Positions 3,297 to 47,863 of a DNA stretch of 64,000 nucleotides are shown one piece after another. The notes beneath the pieces are model-generated. The model worked only from the letters and a program-made list of their open reading frames with translations. It was not told the DNA's origin and ran no database searches. The stretch comes from Anthoceros angustus. Taxonomy: Eukaryota > Plantae > Anthocerotophyta. The DNA lies in the NCBI GenBank assembly GCA_010909165.1, contig MU008167.1:186001-250000 (forward strand). Direction: 5' to 3'. A program made the position numbers and the translations under genes. Position 1 is the stretch's first letter. Each line of letters begins with the position of its first letter.

Positions 3297-4475
3297 ATGT
3301 GTTAAAAAAAAACATGGGACCGGAGGTTCTTTAGGAATCCGGTCCCCACCCTCGGTCCCCTATTTTTTTCGGGGACCGAGGGTTCATAAAAGGTCCGGTT
3401 TAAAATTAGTAAATTACTTAATTTTATATCTAAAGATTTATATTTATTATGGACAGATAGACCCATCTTATAATTGGTATGGTCATAAAGACACTTACCA
3501 TGGATTTATGGGCTATGTCTTTATTTATCTAATACCATCCATGGCTTATTAATATAGTCTTTATTCTATGAGATTTTATTAACTTATTTTGATACATCTA
3601 TAAAAAGTAGATATGTAATATTTTGCTTTGAATGGAGTTATAAATGTGTACAATAATTTGTTGATATGCACGTTCATCCATGAAGATGGACTAAGATATG
3701 GTATCTCAACCATAGGCTTACATAGGACTCTTATCCTATCATACTATGAATAGATACCCTTCAAGAGTACATAAGACCACAACACTAGCATTTGGAGCAT
3801 CACTCATTGTTGCTCTCCTTATTGTGGTATGCTTGTTGTTCTTCTTTCTTGCTTCTTATTCTTCTTCCTTGCTCCTTGTTGTTCTTTCTTGGTAAGGGAT
3901 CTTTTTTTTTAGAGCTCATCTCTTTTTAAGCTTTTTAGGTTTAGGGTTCATTTTTGTTTGAGCTCATCTCTTTTTAAGCTCTTCGCTTTTAAAAGCTTTG
4001 TTTTTTGGCTCTTCATTTGCTATATTAATTTTTTTAAAAAAATTAAAGGTAAAAATGGCTCATTTTTCTCAAAGTTCATCATCCGGGTTTTTTGGAGGAG
4101 CTCCACGTGATGACCAAACAAGGAGTGGCGACAATAGCCAAACAAGCCAACCGAGTCAAAAAAGACAAAAGGTGCAAAAGGCAAGAGTCTTCAAGGAAGA
4201 ATGGAAGGTTGCATTTCATTGGATGGAGTTGTGCTCAATCAATGTAGAGAATCGAAGGTTTTGTGTTGTTCGTGAAAAACATGGTCATGGTGTAGTGGGA
4301 CAAGCTAAGGCTGCGACTCAAGCTTGGGTAAAAGTTGGCGGTCGAACTTTCAAGAGTGCATTGGAGGACCATGCAAGGAGTACATATCATTTAGCCATCA
4401 AGATGGAGCAAGCCCAAGCCAAGGCTCAACAACCAACCATGCAACGAACTTTGGAAATGCATTTTTCCAAAAAGG

Positions 4476-19114: not shown

Positions 19115-21005
19115 CTAGATAAGAGTATTCTCGATCCATGAGGCTAGAACGAGAGCCGCCTGCTTCCACCTTGTGTCTAACATGACATCGTGTGCAACTT
19201 CTCGAATCAATTCCTTGGACCCTTTGAAAAACTCATGGGTCTCATCTACACCTTGATGGTCCTGCAGAACATACCAATAAGATCCATGAAGAGTCATTTC
19301 CGAATCAGGGTGAGAGTTCTTCGGAAGTGACAAAGAGCATGCAGACAGCTCACCACCAGAAAGTCATTCTCTGCCCCAACGACGAACACAGGTGGAGTTG
19401 CAGAGGAGACCGGTAGAGCAACTGGCAAGGAAGCGTTCAGTTTTCGAAGATCAAACAAAGGTATACGGGAGCTTGTTTTGAGTAACTCTTGGTATCTGCA
19501 TAATGGTTAACAAATTACACAAGGGCCCTGTGAAATGAAACAAAATGCAGCACAATGATTTGAAGCAACCTACCTTTTCACTTGGTCATCTGGCATATCA
19601 GGAGAGAAAAAACTTTCGCGGCAAAGGGGTAGCGAATTTGAGAACATTTTTGCTGCCAGACTTAGAGTAACCTGGCCATGAGGTTTATCCTATATTAGCA
19701 CCAAGAAAATGATGCTGTGACCTTCAACCTAGGGCTAAACTGGGTGCAGGATACCTTGACTGCAGTGATCGGTTTTGACAAGACATACCGTTGGACAATA
19801 CCCCTGCATTCGCTCAACACAATTTCTGTCAGCAGTGCCGCAGTTCTGTCATCCGTACAGACATGGTTTTGTTTTTGTTTCTGTATGCTTACCCATTGCC
19901 TGTGGGTGGTACTGAGCAGAGTAGAATGGCTGCTGCAAGCCTGGGGTAGTGATCTGCACAAAGCCAGCAACACAACGGCTGGCCTGTCAGCGTTAACCAA
20001 GCACCAGGCCAGCCAATGGCACCAGCTGGGCGACGTCTGGAAGGTGCATCAGCATGAGCATAGGTAAGGCCTAGGCTGGTAGAATGGAAACAACCCTCAG
20101 GTGCCACATTCGAAGGTCGCTCCACGGCATGTGACATCCGGCCGAGGTAGTACTGAACGATCAATCCTCCAAACGAATGCCCAACCAGCACAGCCTCATT
20201 GGCCAGGTTGGTCTGGATGAAGTATGCCACATCCCTTGCATGTGACTACTGCAGTCATCAGGAGAAGTGCGGCAGAGCATCAGCTCAGAAGAGAACACTC
20301 CACTCACAGCACTACAATGCCCTGCCAACAGTGCACGACTGATACCTGCAGATCTCCAGCAACCTTCTCTGGGGGAGTGTCACTTCCACCCTACACAGCA
20401 CAGCACAACCTCCTGCATTGAAGCAACTTCTCATGGAGCTAATGGACTCATCAGCCCCCAAGCTGTGTGATGAAAAACGACAAACACAACAAACAATGGC
20501 AGGAAAAGTGACAGCCCACCTGGCCAAGTAGGCTGATTGCATAACAATCATGCCCACGATCTGAAAAAAACGGCAACCAATGCTCTGCCCAGCACCAGGC
20601 TGCATGGTAGCTTCCATGAATAAACACAAGCGGTGCCTTGCCAGACGACCGCTCCCGCCCAAGCTGAGAAATCACCTCGAGTCGCAAGCCGGATGGCAAT
20701 GTTTGGAAAAATCTTGCCTGCCCTTGGCTCAAAGCAAACAGAGGAGACTGTGCCTGAGACGGGGAGTCCACAGATGTATGCACCGCCCTTGAGATTCCTT
20801 TCACCTTCACATTAGAAACGGCCACCGAGGCCTTCAACCCACAATAGTTGCCAGCCTCAGAGCTTGCCGAGAGCCAGGATAACGTCAGTCCAGTTGTTGC
20901 TGGACACCTTCTGGGCGCATGGTGACCTCGGGGATGGGGTATTCCACATACCGTACCCTCCAGAAATGGTGACACCGCAGCAGGGCTGATCCAATTCGAC
21001 GGCAT
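19115..21005 (-). CDS. Alpha/beta-hydrolase with an N-terminal organelle-targeting-like extension, multi-exon
   Basis: Exons give PLVFIHGSYHAAWCWAEHW, the nucleophile motif GHSFGG, VVGAENDFLV and a last exon with EVAHDVMLD (catalytic His) ending at 19115. GT-AG introns were traced by eye. Confidence 0.9.
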
Positions 21006-21157
21006 TGCGAATCGCAGCAGGTAGGAAGTCGCCCTAGTTCACCGGAACCTTGTTCGCTTTCGAGTCTGCTGCGTTTGAGGTTCCCTGCAGAGGAGGAGAA
21101 TAGTTCGAATTTCACAGTTCTGGGAAACTGCCTGCTCTGGTGCAGTGGTCTGCAAAT

Positions 21158-21697
21158 ATGCAGATCTTTGTGAAGACTCTGAGGGGGACGACCATCACTT
21201 TGGAGGTGAAGAGGTACGATACCATCACCAACGTCAAGACCAAGGTCCAGGATAAGGAGAAGATTCCACCTGAGCAGCAAAGACTGATATTTGCTGGCAA
21301 GCAGCTGGACGATGGGCGAATAGTGGCAGACTATAACATAGCCAAGGAGTCCACGCTCCATTTGATGCTCCGACTCAAGGGGGGAACCCTGGCTGCTGTG
21401 TCCAGGGCCTGTGTGAAACGGCTTCAGCTTGTGGGAGTGGGATATCGTGCTGCTGTGGACAGCAGCGAGCTTACCCTGAGCTTGGGCTTCTCTCATCCAG
21501 TCCGCATGCCAATCCCAGAAGGCATTTCTGTCAAGGTTGAGGGCAACACCAAAATATACATCCTTGGCTTTGACAAATGTAAGGTAGGGAATTTCTCTTC
21601 TGCAATACGGCTGCTCAGGCCACCAGAACCTTACAAGGGCAAGGGCATCCGGTATGTGGATGAGGTTGTGAAAATCAAGGAGGGCAAGAAGAAATGA
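21158..21697 (+). CDS. Ubiquitin (76 aa, divergent) fused to the C-terminal half of an organellar/bacterial-type ribosomal protein uL6 (103 aa); intronless
   Basis: 21158-21385 reads MQIFVKTL...[11 protein letters not shown]. 21386-21697 reads [40 protein letters not shown]. One uninterrupted reading frame. Confidence 0.93.
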
Positions 21698-22561
21698 ACT
21701 CCCCCATGGAGTGTGCTACTGCTGATTACTTGGGATTTGAAGTTTCACATGTCAGGGATAGGTTGTGTAGATCGTATGGAAGTGGCGGGAATTCCAAACT
21801 TCTGTAAGGCTGTGATCCTGCAGCAGACTCATTGTCCCTTCCCATTTTACTTAGCAAATCCAATTTTTGTTCAGTTGTTGCAGCTGATTGTGCTGCACCA
21901 AATTTTAGCTTGCCAGAACGTTCTTGTCATGATCAGCGAGCTGGCGATGTCTATGGAAGGCTGCTCACACGAGTGAGCACTTTCAGGAATCATTGGTGTC
22001 TTGTCCCAAGTGTGAAAGCTTCAGTGGTGATAAAGCACTGAACCAAGAGTTTGAGAGTTGTCCACAACGTCCAATTTTCAAGATCAAGATTAGGTTACGA
22101 ATCCAGTGTTAATTGTCAGTAACCACCAAGCATTCTTGAAGGCGGTCAGGTCTCAAAGGCAGTGGGAAGGCAGCCAGTTGTGGCTGGTGCAATCATTTAA
22201 TGGATGACGTTGATACAGCTTCAGGGAATGAGGAAGACATAAGGCTGATTGCCTTCTACCACCGTTCTAGACTGGGTGAAAGGCTTATGGAGTAGATTGA
22301 GACCAATCTTGTGAAGGGTTGGTCTTGAAAAAGATGTACGCAGTCCCTTCAGTATGAAGGTATGCCTGAGAGACATTTGCAGACATTGATAAGTCACTGT
22401 GTCCTAAATCTAAAGTCTCTGTTCAGAGAAGGCGTTTGCAGAGATTTGGACATCGACAGTCTTGATCCCTCGAGTTATTTGCGGCATTACACTTACTTGA
22501 ATTAGCATTGCACCTGTTCCTGTGCTTCTCACAGATTCAGGAGAAGAGACCTTGGTCTGAT

Positions 22562-25500
22562 ATGCAGGAACATAGACAGTCGTCCGGCGTTTTGGAAAAG
22601 AGACTGCCCAAAGAGAAAAAAGCATCTGGCGGTGCAGCTGGGAAGCTAGGAAAACCTGTCCGCTCATCTGTCAGCTCTCTGCCTCTTCTGTTTGATCTCA
22701 GTGATTTCAAGGTAGGCGGCCTGCTTGAATGCGTTTGTACAATTATATATACTATGCACGACGGTGGATATTTTGCACGATGAGTTATCAATCTCTGTTC
22801 GTATGGGCTTCTGTGCAGAGCCAATTCGTCTTTGATGAGTTCTTCAACCAGCTCGTCCAGGAGATATGGGGAGTTCAGGACACGACACCTTCAAAGAGGG
22901 CAAGCATCCAAAGTAGAAAGGAAGCTAATGGTCCAGCACCAATGCAATCGGAAGGGCCAACGAAGCTGATTGCTGGGGTTGCTATTCCAGAAGCAGAACC
23001 CATACTTCGGATATTAAACGATGCCAAGGGAGAGATTGTAGGACTTAGCAGCAAGGTACCTAACAGAGGCTGTTGTGTACAAGCACTAAAAAGCAAAATA
23101 CCGTCAAGTGGACAGTAGCTATTGTGTGGCAGGCCTGCCCTCACCCAATTTCAATGAGCAGGTTATGGGGCGGCTGGATAGTCTGAAGAACGAAATAGCA
23201 TCACATGAAGGAAAGTGCCAGGACCAATTTTTGCAGGTAACGCTCTGCATTTGCTGATATCAACTGTAGCAAGTCAGTACTCAGGTCCCATTTCAGAAAT
23301 GCCTATGCATCTGAACCACAACCTACGAGCAGCAGCACATAAAACTTCTCTGGCATGCAAATATGATTTGTCATGGTCCTTGGTCGTGGATCTGGTATGA
23401 GACATAAATGTGTACCAATGATCATGAAGATGACTTCACAGGTTAAGAAGGCATTAGAAGGATTGTTTGAGTGTTTCACACGGCTTGATAAGCGTGTCAC
23501 AGGAGTGGCTCAGACAGCAGCAAGGATCAGCGACCAACTTCAGGTCTGAGACTATGTTCTGATAGTCTCCTTACTTTCCTCCACAGATATTTGGCTTCAC
23601 CACTAATTAAAGTAATGCGTGTCTGAACAGCATACTGACCAGCAGAAGGACTGTGCTTATGAAACAGTGGACCTTATGAAGGTAACAGACTGCCGCCTCG
23701 CAGGTGGAAGTAGTTATGTATTCCTAGCTCTGGACGCTCGTTCCTTGTAGAGTATCAAGCAGTTATTATCTTTTTCTTGACCTAATATGCAAGTGATTTC
23801 AGTACATGGCAGAGTTCAATTCAAGTTTGCCAAAAAGTGAGGAGAGATCTGGTGAAGATTCAAGTTTGCCAAATAGTGAGGAGAGATCTGGTGAGGCTAT
23901 AAATGGAGATTCTGTGGATCATGCCAACAGCGATGCTGTGAAGCTTAGTGGGCTATCACCAATATTCAGTGATGACAAGAGGGTTGCTGAAGCTGCTGTC
24001 ATTGTTCAGAAGCTCCGTGAGTGCATCTCCCTGCATCTTTTGTGCACATATTGTTGTGGAGTGTTGAGAGAGCCTCTTGCACTCAAAGTAACACTTTCAT
24101 CCAGGTTCCTTCGCTGAGGGGAACATCAGAGGAGCTCCTGCTGGTGGTGGTGCTGATAAGACAGCAAGGGTAGGTCTGGATGTTGCAGTGGCAAGGCTTC
24201 AGGACTACTGCAATGGTCAGTGACATAATGTCAGGTCCCCAACTCGTAAATCTTGTGACATACGCGTATTGGTTTTCTGAGTTGAATCGTCGCTAACTGC
24301 AGAACTGGAAAATCGCCTTCTTGCCAAATTTGATATGGCATGTCAAGAGCGAGACCTGAAATCTATGGCAGATTGTGCCAAGATCCTTGGCGAGGTATTC
24401 ATAAGTAGAGGCTCAGTTTGGCAGTTTTATAAGCCATAAAACATTTGGACTGATCTTCTTCTGGTCCTTACTCGCGGTCCAGTTCAACAGGGGAACAAGT
24501 GCAATGCAACGGTATGTGGCAACATTGCCAATGTTCATCAATGTTGAGGTGATGAATATGGATGTGAAGACTCTGCTTGGTGAGGAGTCCCAGGATGGAG
24601 CACCTTTTTTGGAGCCTGACAAGGTTGGACAAGGGCTGGCCATCCTTTACAAGGGGATCACAGGTAGTTAGATTCCTGATTCTATTTGTACAATTTTTTT
24701 TCTAACGCCACATGCTCTCAAGCGATGCAAACATCTTGTACTTACAGATTCCTGTATCAGACACAGTCAGAAAGGAGTCCGCTGTCATAGCTGTTGTTTT
24801 CCCGTCACCAGCTGCGGTCATGGCAATTCTTGTCCAGGTAACGGAGCGAGTTTTGGAAAAACGTCAGCTGGGTATATGTTAGATAGACACATTGGTTTTC
24901 TTGCCTTGCAGAGAGTTTTGGAGCAGCGAGTCCGATTGGTGGTAGATAAGGTTTTGGTGAGGCCTTCCCTATCAGTTCCTGTGCCAATGGAGCAAGGAGG
25001 CTACTTGCAGGTACAGTTGTCCAGTTTGTCCCATTCTAGACCACCAGCATGGTGTGTGACGCTCACTTGTTCTGATCACAAAGTTCCCTGAAGCAGTATC
25101 TCCAAATCCTCAGCACCTGCTATGAGAGGACACTGGGACTTGCCAAGGATCTGCAAACATTCTGCCATGATCAACTGGAATGTGAAGGTAGGATGCAAAA
25201 CCAACTGAAATAGTTTTAAGAGGCTGTTCCTACAATTCTGCTTTGAGCACATTGTTATTCTGGAAAGCGTAGCTTGATAATTTTTGTGAATTTGGTATCC
25301 AGGGGTTGCTGAATCTTTGTTCTCTGAACACAGAGATAACTATCCAGAGTTTGAACGGGCTTCACTCAAGCAGCTCTTCGAAGCGAAGGTAGACAGGACT
25401 TACACGGCTGTATTCTGGCTGGCAGGTCAGCAACTGTTGTTACCATTGCAGAGAGATGTCCTCGTGCGCTGAGCATTTTCTAAAATCTCTCATGGCCTGA

Positions 25501-42507: not shown

Positions 42508-44805
42508 ATGGCCACAGTATGGCAAAGAGATCCGTCATGGACCCAACCAGTTGGTGGGTGTACAGCAATGGTGCGAAGAGCTCCCGCTCTGCTCACTTCA
42601 TGGAGTCAACCGGTGGCAAACAACGAAGCCTCTAGGTGCAGCAGCGTAAGGAACCCAGCACTGCCCACAAAATCTTTGTCTGGGGAAGTTTTATACAGGG
42701 ATGGTCGTCGCCAGGAGCTGGAGCTGTTGTGGCGGCAGTTTTTTTACGACCCTACCATGTGGTGGGATAATAGGCGAGATAAGAAGAGCTCCCGTTCGCC
42801 TGACTTCCGACGTAAGGGGTCTGGCGAGGCCCTGTGGTTGGACAACTTCTCCAACCCAACTTGGGTGGATGAGCAGCTTGTTGCTTTGGATATGCAGATG
42901 GCTCATGCTGCCTCTCCTTCTAACTCCAACTGCAGCTTTTTCGATAAGCCTGATCCCGGGAGGCCTGCAGGATCAGAAATGGGTGTCACGGCTGTAACTG
43001 TGATCACGTTATGTCAGCAAGGAAACCTGACTGAGGCCATGGCAGCCCTGGAGTTTTTGGCGGTCACAGACTGTCCTATATCGCAGTCCCTGTTGTATAC
43101 TGTGCTGAAATTGTGTGCAGCTAAGAAGGATGTGGTTGTGGGGAGAAGAATTCATGATCTTACTGTCAAACTTGGGTTCGAGTCAAGTACGTACGTGGGG
43201 AACCATCTCTTGCGTATGTATGCAGGTGGAGGTATGCTAGAAGAGGCCATGGATGTGTTCACCAATGTAGGCAAACCAGATGCGTTTATGTGGGTTTCCA
43301 TCATCTCCGCACATGCTAAACATGGGAAACCTAATGAAGCCATACAGCTTTACCATGAGATGTGTAGCTCAGGTGTGAAAGCAGATGCTCATGTCTTTGT
43401 AGCTGCCCTTCAAGCTTGCACGCTTGCCACCGACCTGGAATCTGGCAGAAAAGTGCACTCCGATGTCTTGCTCAGTGGCTTTCCTCCTAACGTGTTTGTT
43501 GGCAGCTGCCTGGTGGACATGTATGCAAAATGTGGCCAGCTGGAAGATGCACGCCAGGTTTTTGACAGCTTGCCTACAAAGGATGTGGTGACCTGGACGG
43601 CCCTGATCTCTGGGTACGCAAATCACGGGCTTGGTCAAGAGGCGCTTGTTCTGTATGGACAAATGAAGCAAGACGGTCTGATTTTGTGTAACGATTGTAC
43701 GTTTTCTTCTCTTTTGAAGGCTTGTGCAAGCGCTGGTGCTCTGAAGGAGGGCAGGCAGCTGCACTCACAGATTGTGGGAAGAGGACAGCTAAATAACATT
43801 CTGGTGGGCACATGCCTGGTGGACATGTACGCCAAATGTGGTGAACTGGAAGTTGCTCGTACTGTTTTTGACAGCTTGGCCACGAAGGACGTGGTCACAT
43901 GGAATGCCCTGATAGCTGGGTATGGAGCTTGTGATGAAGGTCACAGGGCATTGGTTTGTTTTGAGGAGATGGTACTCGCAGGTATTCAGCCTGATGATGC
44001 TACCTTTACCAACGTCTTGGTAGCATGCAGTCATGAGGGATTGGTTGATGAGGGTCACAAGCACTTCCGGGCCATGGTTGAACAGCATGGCATCAAACCT
44101 AATGTCCAGCACTACAATTGCATGATTGATCTTCTTGGGCGTGCAGGCCATCTAGATGAGGCAGAGAAGATGCTACGATCATGTGAAGGCCAAGACAATG
44201 TTGTGGGCTTGACGTCTTTGCTGACTGCCTGCAAAAGTCACGGGGATGTAGAGAGGGCGACGCGGTGTTTTGAAAGTCTTGTCAGAGTGGACCCTAAGCG
44301 GGCATCCACGTATGTGCTCATGGCCAATGTCTATGCAAATGCAGGTAGGTGGGGAGATGTAGAGAGGATTGAAAGGCAGAGAATGGTAGCAGGAGCTAAA
44401 AAGAAACCTGCAGTGGCAGGCATCGAGGTAAATGAGCAGGTACATACATTTGTGGTGGGAGATAGTAGGGATGATATTTCCCTCACCTTAGAGACCATGA
44501 ATGTACGGGTGAAGGAGGAAGGAGGCCATGTCCCGCACACAAAGTTGGTGTTGAAGCCACTGTCTGAGAAGGAAAAGGAAGATGCGCTTTGCGGGCATGC
44601 TGAGAAGCTAGCCCTGGCGTATGGTCTTCTGAATACTCCCAGTGGCACACCCTTGATGGTAACAAAGAATTTACGCATGTGCAGTGACTGCCACAGTTCC
44701 ACCGAGATCATGTCAAGGGTTGAAAGGAGGGACATTGTTGTAAGGGATGCATACCGTGTGCATCGATTCGCAGCGGGTTGTTGCAGTTGTAAGGGTCGAC
44801 CATAA
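42508..44805 (+). CDS. PLS-class PPR RNA-editing factor with E1/E2 and a DYW:KP (GRP-ending) domain; carries an N-terminal OSB-type PDF motif; intronless, 765 aa
   Basis: About 11 L-S-P repeats, then E1/E2 and KPAVAGIEV (KPAxA box). Deaminase motifs HAEKLALAYG and NLRMCSDCH; C-terminus CSCKGRP. Codons at ~42715-42880 give WWDNRRDKKSSRSPDFRRKGSGEALWL. Confidence 0.95.
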   Translation: MATVWQRDPSWTQPVGGCTAMVRRAPALLTSWSQPVANNEASRCSSVRNPALPTKSLSGEVLYRDGRRQELELLWRQFFYDPTMWWDNRRDKKSSRSPDFRRKGSGEALWLDNFSNPTWVDEQLVALDMQMAHAASPSNSNCSFFDKPDPGRPAGSEMGVTAVTVITLCQQGNLTEAMAALEFLAVTDCPISQSLLYTVLKLCAAKKDVVVGRRIHDLTVKLGFESSTYVGNHLLRMYAGGGMLEEAMDVFTNVGKPDAFMWVSIISAHAKHGKPNEAIQLYHEMCSSGVKADAHVFVAALQACTLATDLESGRKVHSDVLLSGFPPNVFVGSCLVDMYAKCGQLEDARQVFDSLPTKDVVTWTALISGYANHGLGQEALVLYGQMKQDGLILCNDCTFSSLLKACASAGALKEGRQLHSQIVGRGQLNNILVGTCLVDMYAKCGELEVARTVFDSLATKDVVTWNALIAGYGACDEGHRALVCFEEMVLAGIQPDDATFTNVLVACSHEGLVDEGHKHFRAMVEQHGIKPNVQHYNCMIDLLGRAGHLDEAEKMLRSCEGQDNVVGLTSLLTACKSHGDVERATRCFESLVRVDPKRASTYVLMANVYANAGRWGDVERIERQRMVAGAKKKPAVAGIEVNEQVHTFVVGDSRDDISLTLETMNVRVKEEGGHVPHTKLVLKPLSEKEKEDALCGHAEKLALAYGLLNTPSGTPLMVTKNLRMCSDCHSSTEIMSRVERRDIVVRDAYRVHRFAAGCCSCKGRP

Positions 44806-45895: not shown

Positions 45896-47863
45896 TCAAC
45901 TATTCAAGAGTCCTGTCGCCCCTGTAAGTAGCTTCAAGTGAGCTATGATTTCCTTGCGTTGGGGATGGTCTGTGTCTTCTACCTGAAAAGTATGGACTTG
46001 ATTGTCGATCTCAATCCAGGTTCTCCCTGGAGTCTTCGTCACACCTGCAGCTTGCATCCTGTTTCTAATCTCAGCTCGACCTTCCCAATTTCCTGTCGCT
46101 TCATAAATGTTGGACATAAGCACATACGCTGCAGCATTAGCTGGCTCTAGGTTGACGATAGAATCAAAGGCAGTTCTACCCAATTTCATGTTACCATGCG
46201 TAAGGCATGCTCCAAGTACAGTGGTCCAAACTACAACATCTGGCTGCAGAGGCATGTTCTTAATTAAGTCCTCTGCCTTGTCCAGATATCCAGCACGGCA
46301 GAACAGGTCCACCATGCAGGCAAAATGTTCCATTCCTGGACTGATCCCAAATTCCTCGAACATTGATTGAAAGAGTGCACGCCCCTCATTCAAAAGGCCC
46401 TCGTGGCCACATGCTGAGAGCACACAAAGAAAAGTTACGTGATCAGGTTTCATCCCTGCTGCGCGCAGTTGCTGAAAAAGCTGGAGTGCTTCCTGTCCGT
46501 GGCCATGCTGGGCATAGGCGGCTATGATGGCCGTCCAAGTCACAAGATCAGACTTGGGCAGGCTGTCGAAAACTGCCCTGGCTTCAACAAGGCTGCCACA
46601 CTTGGAATACATGCTCAGCAATGTGTTTCCAAGCACAGCATCCAGCTCTAACCCACTTTTAACAAGCATGATATGAATCTTCCGGCCCTGTTGCAGTGCT
46701 GCTATGCTGCTACACGCCTTGAGCGCACCCAAGAACGTAACCCTGTTAGGCTTGATGCCTTCCTGCTGCATTCTTTCGAAGAGTTGGAGAGCTTCCTGCC
46801 CATGACCAGACTGAGCATACTCTTCGATCATAGCAGACCAGGTCACAACATTCCTTTCAGGCATCTGATCAAAGAGAATCCACGCTTCCTCGAAGCTCCC
46901 GCCCTTAGCATACCCTGTAACCATGGCATTCCATGAGAACAAATCTTTCCGAGGGAGGCTGTCAAATATCTCCCTTGCTTCACCCAGGCTCCCACATTTG
47001 GCATACATGTCAACCAGGGTATTCCCGATCACAGCATTTGACACAAGGCCACTGTTCATGAGCTGCATGTGCACCCACCGCCCATCTTTCAAAGCTCCAA
47101 TGCCTGCACAGGCCTTGAGAACAATCGAAAATGTGAACATATCCGGCTCCATTCCCTCCTGTTGCATCCTCCGGAAAAGTGAAAGAGCTTCCTCCCCTCG
47201 CCCACGCTGAGCCAATCCTGCCAGCAACGCATTCCAGGACACCACGTCTCTCTCCGGCAGTTCATCAAAGACTCTGCGAGCCTCCTCCAGGCTACCACAT
47301 TTTGCATACATGTCCACAAGAGTGTTTCCAACGAAGATATGATCCTCATAACCAGCTTCTGCAATCTGGGCGTGAATTGCCCTGCCATCTGCGAGGGAAC
47401 GTGTGCTCGCACAAGCTTTAAGCACAGCAACATACACATGGTTGTCCGGCTGAACCCTAGAAAGCTGCATCTCCTGGAACAATCTGATACTCTGCTTCCC
47501 CGCCCCATGCCTGCAATTTGCCAGAATAATAGCTTGCCAAGCATGCGAATCAGGCTCGAAAATCCTCCGGAACGCCTGGTTCGCCTCCTGCAAACTCCCA
47601 CACACCTCGAAGAGGCGAATCAGCTTGTTGCCCCACCAAACCAAGGAGTCGAACCCCCTCTCAGCAATCAGCGAATGCACCCTCCTCCCTACTTCCAACT
47701 CCCTCCCTTTGGTGCACCGCTGCAGCAGACACTGCAGAACATGCGTCGGCAACACAAATCCGCCCTGCCGAAAAGCATCAGCCGCATTGAGTGCCTCATC
47801 CAGCCGTGCTTTCTCACAAAACCTCGCCACCTCCCGGAGAGAACCAAGCAGTAAGTAGGCCAT
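45896..47863 (-). CDS. PLS-class PPR protein, E+ type (PG box, no deaminase domain); intronless, 655 aa
   Basis: Multiple P-L-S repeats and E1/E2, then KTPGRTWIEIDNQVHTF..HPQ, with a stop before any HxE/CxxC motif. Confidence 0.93.
   Translation of the reverse strand: MAYLLLGSLREVARFCEKARLDEALNAADAFRQGGFVLPTHVLQCLLQRCTKGRELEVGRRVHSLIAERGFDSLVWWGNKLIRLFEVCGSLQEANQAFRRIFEPDSHAWQAIILANCRHGAGKQSIRLFQEMQLSRVQPDNHVYVAVLKACASTRSLADGRAIHAQIAEAGYEDHIFVGNTLVDMYAKCGSLEEARRVFDELPERDVVSWNALLAGLAQRGRGEEALSLFRRMQQEGMEPDMFTFSIVLKACAGIGALKDGRWVHMQLMNSGLVSNAVIGNTLVDMYAKCGSLGEAREIFDSLPRKDLFSWNAMVTGYAKGGSFEEAWILFDQMPERNVVTWSAMIEEYAQSGHGQEALQLFERMQQEGIKPNRVTFLGALKACSSIAALQQGRKIHIMLVKSGLELDAVLGNTLLSMYSKCGSLVEARAVFDSLPKSDLVTWTAIIAAYAQHGHGQEALQLFQQLRAAGMKPDHVTFLCVLSACGHEGLLNEGRALFQSMFEEFGISPGMEHFACMVDLFCRAGYLDKAEDLIKNMPLQPDVVVWTTVLGACLTHGNMKLGRTAFDSIVNLEPANAAAYVLMSNIYEATGNWEGRAEIRNRMQAAGVTKTPGRTWIEIDNQVHTFQVEDTDHPQRKEIIAHLKLLTGATGLLNS

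Follow-up and report, generated by a model that had tools for sequence, protein, structure and literature searches.

How does a ribosomal protein of organellar type come to be made behind ubiquitin, and what would the ubiquitin do for it? The question is raised by a gene in a 64,000-nucleotide (nt) stretch of the genome of the hornwort Anthoceros angustus (contig MU008167.1, positions 186,001 to 250,000), which was analysed as a whole and is hereafter called the window; positions are given in the window's own numbering. In this gene a single open reading frame (ORF) encodes a ubiquitin unit and, immediately behind it, the C-terminal domain of a plastid-type ribosomal protein uL6. That this is a real, expressed fusion gene we regard as nearly certain, because both parts lie on one RNA in the species itself and the same junction is found in its relatives. 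The function of the ubiquitin, the processing of the precursor and the destination of the uL6 part are less firmly indicated, and they are considered in turn below.

Architecture of the fusion

The coding region consists of the following elements.

21158-21697, + strand: ubiquitin-uL6 ORF, intact, 179 codons plus stop
21158-21385, + strand: ubiquitin unit, 76 codons, C-terminus LRLKGG, assigned by PF00240, residue comparison, AlphaFold2 and Foldseek
21386-21697, + strand: uL6 half, 103 codons plus stop, C-terminal alpha/beta domain of plastid type, assigned by PF00347
21380-21388, + strand: junction codons GGG GGA / ACC, that is, Gly75 Gly76 / Thr77, predicted deubiquitinase site

Pfam places ubiquitin (PF00240) at residues 3-73, with an E-value of 4.5e-27 and 94 bits, and Ribosomal_L6 (PF00347) at residues 92-166 of the same ORF, with an E-value of 7.6e-19. 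There is one ubiquitin unit, without the head-to-tail repeats of plant polyubiquitin genes, and no spacer follows it: LRLKGG passes directly into TLAAV (…LRLKGG/TLAAV). The first-pass annotation, made from the letters alone, had described this frame as a complete ubiquitin followed by half of uL6. Its intact ORF, LRLKGG terminus and direct junction were all borne out, but the ubiquitin is not canonical, differing from plant ubiquitin at 16 of 76 residues (79% identical). The description of the uL6 part as a half-domain has to be corrected, since it is a complete second alpha/beta domain that begins at the position of a conserved internal Met. This Met opens the second domain of uL6c proteins (…DNMVVGVSKGF…) and aligns with Thr77 here. 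The uL6 half has neither the N-terminal domain of the full-length protein nor a transit peptide, and ubiquitin stands in front of it.

An AlphaFold2 model, which rests on a small alignment, has two well-folded domains, with predicted local distance difference test (pLDDT) values in the ubiquitin part of 81-90 at residues 1-60 and 70 at residues 61-70. The linker, at about residues 74-81, is modelled poorly (pLDDT <50 at 76-80). Foldseek matched the first domain to ubiquitin at template modelling (TM) scores of 0.92-0.94 and a root mean square deviation of 1.3-1.4 Å, and the other domain to chloroplast and bacterial uL6. As modelled, the GG/T site would sit in a disordered, exposed linker between two folded domains.

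Transcription across the junction and the position of the start codon

Transcripts were studied by aligning Logan contigs of four runs to positions 19500-23500, one run being from A. angustus itself (X1) and the others from three relatives, organisms B, C and D. We take these contigs to be derived from cDNA because the introns of a neighbouring gene are spliced out of them. An own-species RNA contig spans 21142-22357 with no differences and no gaps, and since it is unbroken, both halves must lie on one RNA without a splice between them. The first-pass annotation had asked for reads across 21385/21386, and this contig provides an exact match there; contigs of organisms B, C and D cross the junction as well. 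Furthermore, the ubiquitin part taken alone was found in RNA runs of four organisms from eight studies. The untranslated regions (UTRs) and the leader intron are arranged as follows.

20995-21020, + strand: non-coding 5′ exon 1, minimum extent; overlaps the 5′ end of the divergent neighbouring gene
21021-21145, + strand: leader (5′ UTR) intron, 125 nt, GT..AG, ending 12 nt ahead of the ubiquitin ATG; from an RNA joint
21146-21157, + strand: 5′ UTR part of exon 2; start context aatATGc, with A at -3
21698-22357, + strand: 3′ UTR, end uncertain; contigs of the relatives stop at 22042, 22322 and 22357

The leader intron is placed by an own-species RNA contig that joins 21016 to 21142 (cut +4) with 26 letters on the short side of the joint, and an unspliced form of the leader exists too, in an own-species RNA record that runs unbroken over 20991-21171. 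In plant polyubiquitin genes, a 5′ UTR intron right ahead of the ATG is typical (PMC3161867). The intron immediately ahead of the ATG in this gene suggests that the gene head was taken from a polyubiquitin-type gene. The possibility that a coding exon further upstream contributes a transit peptide by way of the leader intron was considered and rejected: above the splice donor the frame lacks an ATG and meets a TGA at 20970, which means that exon 1 cannot provide a transit peptide.

Exon 2 contains three ATGs ahead of the uL6 part, one at 21158 in good context, one at 21312 out of frame, and one at 21365 in frame and in weak context. The last of these is Met70 of ubiquitin, which arose by a derived replacement (V70M) and lies 7 codons ahead of the junction. 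With ACC as the junction codon in this species, no in-frame start precedes the ATG of ubiquitin, which is likely to be needed for translation of the uL6 half.

At the other end of the transcript, one own-species contig splices a GT..AG intron (22358-22532) from the 3′ UTR and extends to 22613. A separate + strand gene occupies this region (22423-23500, with introns at 22710-22816, 23054-23159 and 23234-23438). The splice may reflect read-through into this gene, or the contig may show an alternative 5′ exon belonging to it, and an intron in the 3′ UTR could make that isoform a target of nonsense-mediated decay.

History of the locus

The contigs of the three relatives are collinear with the window across the junction, with 42 differences in 900 nt for organism D, 63 in about 1180 nt for organism C and 167 in about 1840 nt for organism B. 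The indels listed for them (2, 5 and 9, respectively) are all in the 3′ UTR or the 5′ leader, and none falls in the 540-nt frame.

A more distant relative shows a different outcome. The closest protein to the uL6 half in large collections (P0121) has 103 amino acids, is identical to the window's half at 89 of 103 positions, and starts MLAAVTRASVKRLQ. On its contig (L001) an alpha/beta-hydrolase gene stands head to head with the uL6 half, as it does in the window, and the two loci are orthologous on this account. The hydrolase gene of the window is given here.

19574-21020, - strand: alpha/beta-hydrolase neighbour, divergent, with CT..AC introns; syntenic with the relative's locus L001

Directly upstream of the uL6 ATG, L001 carries a broken ubiquitin with at least three frame breaks. 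The relic reads MQI, a frameshift, VKTLTGK…, a 4-nt insertion, …DQQRLIFAG, a 10-nt deletion, and an end …ADYNIQKESTLHLVLRPRED (...LHLVLRPRED). The junction codon of L001 is ATG, which follows the relic with no extra nucleotides, as against ACC in the window. We infer that the common ancestor had ubiquitin followed by a uL6 half beginning with Met, and that one lineage kept the Met while its ubiquitin decayed, with the reverse in the other. By comparison of the two sequences, the window's lineage is the one that lost the Met (ACC) and retained the open ubiquitin frame. The occurrence of the junction in orthologous position elsewhere, which the first-pass annotation had wished to see examined, is thus found both in the syntenic L001 and in the three closer organisms.

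Two further features of L001 concern its relic. The relic's ATG now opens a 7-codon upstream ORF (4097-4120, MQILSKR-stop) ahead of the uL6 start, and since this ORF precedes it, translation of the relative's uL6 may use reinitiation, leaky scanning or a moved transcription start. In addition, a putative splice acceptor, tttcag, remains 6 nt ahead of the relic ATG.

When the uL6 half is compared between the window and L001, the nonsynonymous rate (dN) is 0.074 and the synonymous rate (dS), which is saturated, about 1.55, for an omega of 0.048. This is far from the neutral value that a young copy might have shown in the comparison proposed by the first-pass annotation, and the substitution pattern marks the uL6 half as a strongly constrained translated protein. 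Moreover, since synonymous sites are saturated between the window and a relative with the same junction, the fusion must be old.

Origin of the uL6 half

The uL6 half is plastid-like. Its best match is spinach plastid uL6c, residues 117-215 (5mlc_H; E-value 1.6e-37, 131 bits), and it scores about 100-110 bits against bacterial uL6 and 80.6 bits against the Arabidopsis mitoribosomal uL6m (6xyw_Af, 102 amino acids), where residues 11-102 of the half align to 7-100 of uL6m. Identity to land-plant uL6c is 64-69%. In a tree of 55 uL6 sequences, among which mitochondrial-type uL6m is not represented, the half from the window groups with P0121 with full support, on a long stem (0.84) inside the plastid-type group. 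The two are not part of the clade, itself supported, that unites 33 land-plant uL6c rows, and an algal uL6c and bacteria lie further out.

The distant relative also has an ordinary uL6c gene (L082, 2298-3123, + strand; product P0127). Its exon 1 encodes an N-terminal extension rich in Ser, Thr and Ala, which is the transit peptide, together with the first domain, and ends …HGLF; an intron follows, and the last exon starts RTLTDNM. Because this last exon begins 6 codons before the point at which the half-size protein starts, the half-size protein is nearly coextensive with what the final uL6c exon encodes. The full-length P0127 and the half-size P0121 are identical at only 67 of 101 positions, and since the same relative carries both, the half-size gene is an extra, old and separately evolving paralogue. 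This paralogue has conserved N-terminal and C-terminal changes of its own. In both species, the first 24 residues after the junction include four basic residues and none that is acidic. Ala, Ser, Leu and Arg are more frequent there than in the corresponding part of uL6c, an acidic residue and two glycines of which have been lost. The predicted released product of 103 amino acids has an N-terminal Thr and an isoelectric point (pI) of 9.9.

The many "uL6c-like" proteins of 105-106 amino acids in flowering plants were considered as members of an old half-size family that would include this one and rejected, as each pairs tightly in the tree with the full-length uL6c of its own species. By this placement they are last-exon fragments, isoforms or recent copies.

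Constraint on the ubiquitin leader

The 16 replacements in the ubiquitin unit are T9R, K11T, E18K, S19R, S20Y, D24T, A28T, I30V, G35K, D39E, E51D, T55I, L56V, Q62A, V70M and R74K. Fifteen core positions are kept except for I30V and L56V, and the unit retains K6, K27, K29, K33, K48, K63, I44, H68, R72, L73 and the terminal GG; K11 is lost. The unit has become basic, with a net charge of +5 and a pI of 9.75, compared with 6.56 for canonical ubiquitin.

Over the 61 codons that can be aligned with the L001 relic, the proportion of synonymous differences (pS) is 0.85 and that of nonsynonymous differences (pN) is 0.22. A simple simulation of neutral drift, run with 0.78 substitutions per site, gave an expected identity to plant ubiquitin of about 23%, against the 79% observed, and put the chance of staying free of stop codons at 6%. 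We read the ubiquitin as being under relaxed but real constraint, that is, as a leader that has to remain open, foldable and GG-ended but is otherwise free to depart from ubiquitin. Its decay in the relative and its fast evolution suggest that it is dispensable once the uL6 half has a start codon, and that it may be only weakly constrained.

Proposed mechanism and destination

We propose that the head of a polyubiquitin-type gene, comprising promoter region, leader intron and one ubiquitin unit, was fused in frame after Gly76 to a paralogue of the uL6 C-terminal domain, and that this head would now drive and start translation of the half-size uL6. Before cleavage, ubiquitin would supply the start codon and ensure high expression, and it might also help a small and very basic ribosomal protein to fold. 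The precursor would then be cut co-translationally after LRLKGG by ordinary deubiquitinases, in the manner of the ubiquitin-eL40 and ubiquitin-eS31 precursors and of engineered ubiquitin fusions in plants, freeing a basic 103-residue protein with N-terminal Thr, a stabilising residue. Linear ubiquitin fusions are generally cleaved after Gly76 in eukaryotes, and in plants they have been used to raise transgene expression. For ubiquitin-ribosomal protein fusions, co-translational cleavage and a cis chaperone role for ubiquitin have been proposed (PMC8122580, PMC6721733). Cleavage after GG is fairly probable here because an intact GG is followed by Thr and not by Pro, in a stretch that the model renders as a flexible linker. 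The first-pass annotation had suggested that ubiquitin provides a translation start or a chaperone. Comparison of the loci supports the first of these functions, given that the relative kept the ATG and its ubiquitin decayed, while the window has ACC and an open ubiquitin frame; the chaperone function, like the import without a classical presequence that was also suggested, stays at the level of a suggestion.

As a last step, the released half-size uL6 would serve the mitochondrial ribosome in place of the rpl6 product. The protein given as uL6m in Arabidopsis is AT2G18400 (PMC6953067). In hornwort mitochondrial genomes, the ribosomal protein genes reported to be kept are rpl10 and rps13 only, and the Selaginella mitochondrial genome keeps none and that of Isoetes four (bioRxiv 10.1101/2022.12.23.521604). 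The basic start of the half, rich in Ala, Ser, Leu and Arg, also bears on the destination. A mitochondrial role is the best guess because the plastid has its two-domain uL6c and the uL6m of land plants is a single C-terminal domain of about 102 amino acids. Replacement of the rpl6 product in mitochondria, judged by these comparisons, is close to an even call. It would require retargeting, since the half is plastid-type by sequence.

Leaving the mitochondrial step aside, the proposal as a whole tips slightly towards the probable. In its fullest form it would be the first natural case of a nucleus-encoded organellar, and probably mitochondrial, ribosomal protein made as a ubiquitin fusion, in which deubiquitinase processing stands in both for a start codon of the protein itself and for a cleavable presequence of the classical kind, and in which a plastid-derived half-size uL6 took over the role of mitochondrial rpl6 after that lineage lost the mitochondrial gene. 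We put this fullest form forward tentatively, as somewhat short of an even chance.

Competing explanations

Several observations weigh against the proposal. This ubiquitin, with its 16 changes and the loss of K11, evolves much faster than any canonical ubiquitin, and in the distant relative it has decayed. For the ubiquitin part, organisms C and D each have a 31-mer share of 0.10 and organism B one of 0.25, compared with 0.17-0.18 for the whole 1.2-kb stretch, although this is a coarse measure for which only 20 words were sampled. The tail is LRLKGG instead of LRLRGG (R74K), Met70 offers an alternative in-frame start, and the uL6 half is related by sequence to plastid uL6c and not to Arabidopsis uL6m (131 vs 81 bits).

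Some of these points are what would be expected if the ubiquitin were a decaying passenger, with no selected role beyond carrying the start codon, drifting in sequence and cleaved only incidentally, to be lost once a start such as Met70 takes over. Replacement of 16 of 76 residues in a protein that is otherwise almost invariant fits such a fate, as do the frameshifted relic, the derived in-frame ATG 7 codons before the junction, and a word share in organisms C and D no higher than that of the whole stretch. Drift of this kind, on the other hand, predicts about 23% identity and stop codons, whereas the frame has stayed open with no indels in four organisms while the UTRs gathered 2-9; the core is unchanged except for I30V and L56V, the GG is intact, and pN is far below pS against the relic. 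In addition, the fusion protein would be made anyway, the ATG at 21158 being in better context than the one at 21365. We consider a passenger ubiquitin unlikely.

A second possibility accepts the gene and its processing and holds that the released half acts in the plastid or the cytosol, in an extra-ribosomal or assembly role. The plastid character of the half, in its 64-69% identity to uL6c and in its position inside the plastid and algal group of the tree, agrees with this. However, the half lacks a transit peptide and the lineage has a normal two-domain uL6c that has one; the long stem branch and the paralogue's own conserved changes at both ends likewise set it apart from uL6c, and its size equals that of plant uL6m. 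Such a destination appears quite improbable, and a mitochondrial one is preferred.

The ubiquitin-like domain might instead never be removed, and serve as a new N-terminal domain that replaces the lost first domain of uL6 or docks elsewhere. A stably folded N-terminal ubiquitin would hinder organelle import, and this expectation counts against an uncleaved protein. So do the intact GG followed by Thr and not Pro, the modelled position of the junction in a disordered, exposed linker, and the fact that the relative dispenses with the domain while its uL6 half is still strongly constrained. R74K does alter the recognition tail, the basic charge of the domain (+5, pI 9.75 vs 6.56) is as expected of a part that contacts RNA, and the ubiquitin-eS31 of Giardia has been reported to be uncleaved (PMC8122580). 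An uncleaved two-domain protein nonetheless seems very unlikely, and processing after Gly76 remains the favoured course.

Finally, an assembly chimera or a young, neutral and functionless chimeric retrocopy, the outcomes by which the first-pass annotation had expected to be overturned, would suit the intronless coding part and a junction only 6 codons from an intron position of uL6c, but misassembly and recent origin are both refuted by the exact own-species RNA contigs over the junction, the collinear transcripts in three other organisms, the syntenic orthologue at saturated synonymous distance and the omega of 0.048, which together leave an expressed gene with a shared junction, a non-neutral uL6 half and no sign of misassembly, and make this explanation extremely improbable.

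Searches for other fusions

When the whole 179-residue protein was searched against 5.8 billion proteins, polyubiquitins dominated, and none of the 120 matches listed carried PF00347. Scoring the same 5.8 billion proteins on the uL6 part gave a single close relative, P0121 (87%), and no fusion. HMMER searches with the uL6 half against 1.84 billion representatives, followed by a ubiquitin scan, found a ubiquitin domain in none of 266 uL6 relatives, and in a scan of metagenome contigs all matches were bacterial uL6, 48-60% identical to the half. Rare fusions with eS8, eS19, uL1 and eL41 were recorded in a survey of ubiquitin architectures published in 2021 (PMC8122580). PF00347 is absent from the architecture table of that survey, whose cut-off of 80% identity to yeast ubiquitin a unit like this one (79%) may just miss (PMC8122580). 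The databases and literature searched thus agree with the first-pass annotation, which knew of no case where ubiquitin is joined to a ribosomal protein of organellar type.

That ubiquitin can precede a small basic ribosomal protein in one reading frame is already familiar. What is new is the bacterial-type, organelle-related partner, the loss of the partner's start codon, and the decay of the ubiquitin in a sister lineage. As no matching fusion protein was present in the collections searched, the locus also illustrates that small ubiquitin units ahead of genes can be overlooked by annotation.

Neighbouring genes

The ubiquitin-uL6 gene and the - strand hydrolase gene stand head to head with overlapping 5′ exons (20991-21042). 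An RNA contig in organisms C and D runs through both genes but omits 21042-21142, with non-canonical ends (CC..TG); either the leader intron is placed differently in these organisms, or 101 nt have been deleted from their genomes. The ORF in the first exon of the hydrolase gene (20451-21005, - strand) has a weak Pfam match to UBM, a motif that binds ubiquitin, with an E-value of 0.0013, which is under the curated cut-off and probably due to chance.

Elsewhere in the window, an intronless gene on the + strand (42508-44805) encodes a pentatricopeptide repeat (PPR) protein of 765 amino acids, the C-terminus of which (44302-44805) is a deaminase domain resembling DYW and belonging to the KP type (…KKKPAVAGIEV… HAEKLA… CSDCH… CSCKGRP-stop). 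KP-type DYW domains are not known outside hornworts, lycophytes and ferns. A second intronless PPR gene, of the PLS type, lies at 45896-47863 on the - strand.

Comparison with known systems

Unusual ubiquitin fusions have been described in algae, where chlorarachniophytes and cryptophytes have ubiquitin joined to actin, P1/P2, NiSOD and IMP (Archibald 2003, Sibbald 2019; PMC6332867). Like the gene described here, these are lineage-restricted, expressed fusions of an N-terminal ubiquitin to a non-standard partner that automatic annotation easily overlooks (PMC6332867). They differ in that the partners listed include no organellar ribosomal protein, and in that the partner here has lost its own start codon. 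A targeted search found no extra ubiquitin fusions in Arabidopsis or Chlamydomonas (PMC6332867).

With respect to the partner, the nearest parallel in size is the plant mitochondrial uL6m (AT2G18400; 6xyw chain Af, 102 amino acids), which is likewise a single domain from the C-terminal half and of nearly equal length (103 amino acids here). The half in the window, in contrast, is closer to plastid uL6c, and no ubiquitin leader has been reported for the Arabidopsis protein. A precedent for such a replacement may be the mitochondrial rps13 of Arabidopsis, which, as Adams and colleagues are said to have described in 2002, was replaced by a duplicated plastid counterpart. In both cases the nucleus holds, besides the gene for the plastid ribosomal protein, a further paralogue of it, and the mitochondrial genome of the lineage may be without the corresponding gene, whereas the rps13 copy gained a mitochondrial presequence, and here ubiquitin was added and only half of the protein copied. 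Should the product of the present gene prove to be mitochondrial, it would add a case in which a mitochondrial ribosomal protein has been replaced by a truncated plastid paralogue, and one in which an organellar protein is expressed by way of the cytosolic deubiquitinase system.

With respect to the leader, FUBI-eS30 (FAU) also has a diverged ubiquitin-like sequence with a GG end before a ribosomal protein. The FUBI leader is not known to be conjugated to other proteins, and a protease removes it. Its partner is the cytosolic eS30, and it is ancient and has diverged far more than the leader in the window, which clearly derives from ubiquitin and is recent enough for PF00240 to score it at 94 bits.

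The closest resemblance in layout is to ubiquitin-eL40 (UBA52/UBI1,2) and ubiquitin-eS31 (RPS27A/UBI3), where one ubiquitin at the N-terminus likewise ends at Gly76 and is followed, on one messenger RNA, by a small basic ribosomal protein. The partner here is a plastid-type PF00347 protein and not the cytosolic eL40 (PF01020) or eS31 (PF01599). Because the ubiquitin is only 79% canonical, the gene is unlikely to supply the ubiquitin pool, and unlike its standard counterparts it is restricted to a lineage and was lost again in a relative. Why eL40 and eS31 are the near-exclusive partners of ubiquitin is an open question, for which this locus offers a natural comparison. The contrast between a partner that lost its start and needs ubiquitin and one that kept its ATG while ubiquitin decayed probes what the leader contributes, whether a start codon, expression level, folding or a defined N-terminus other than Met.

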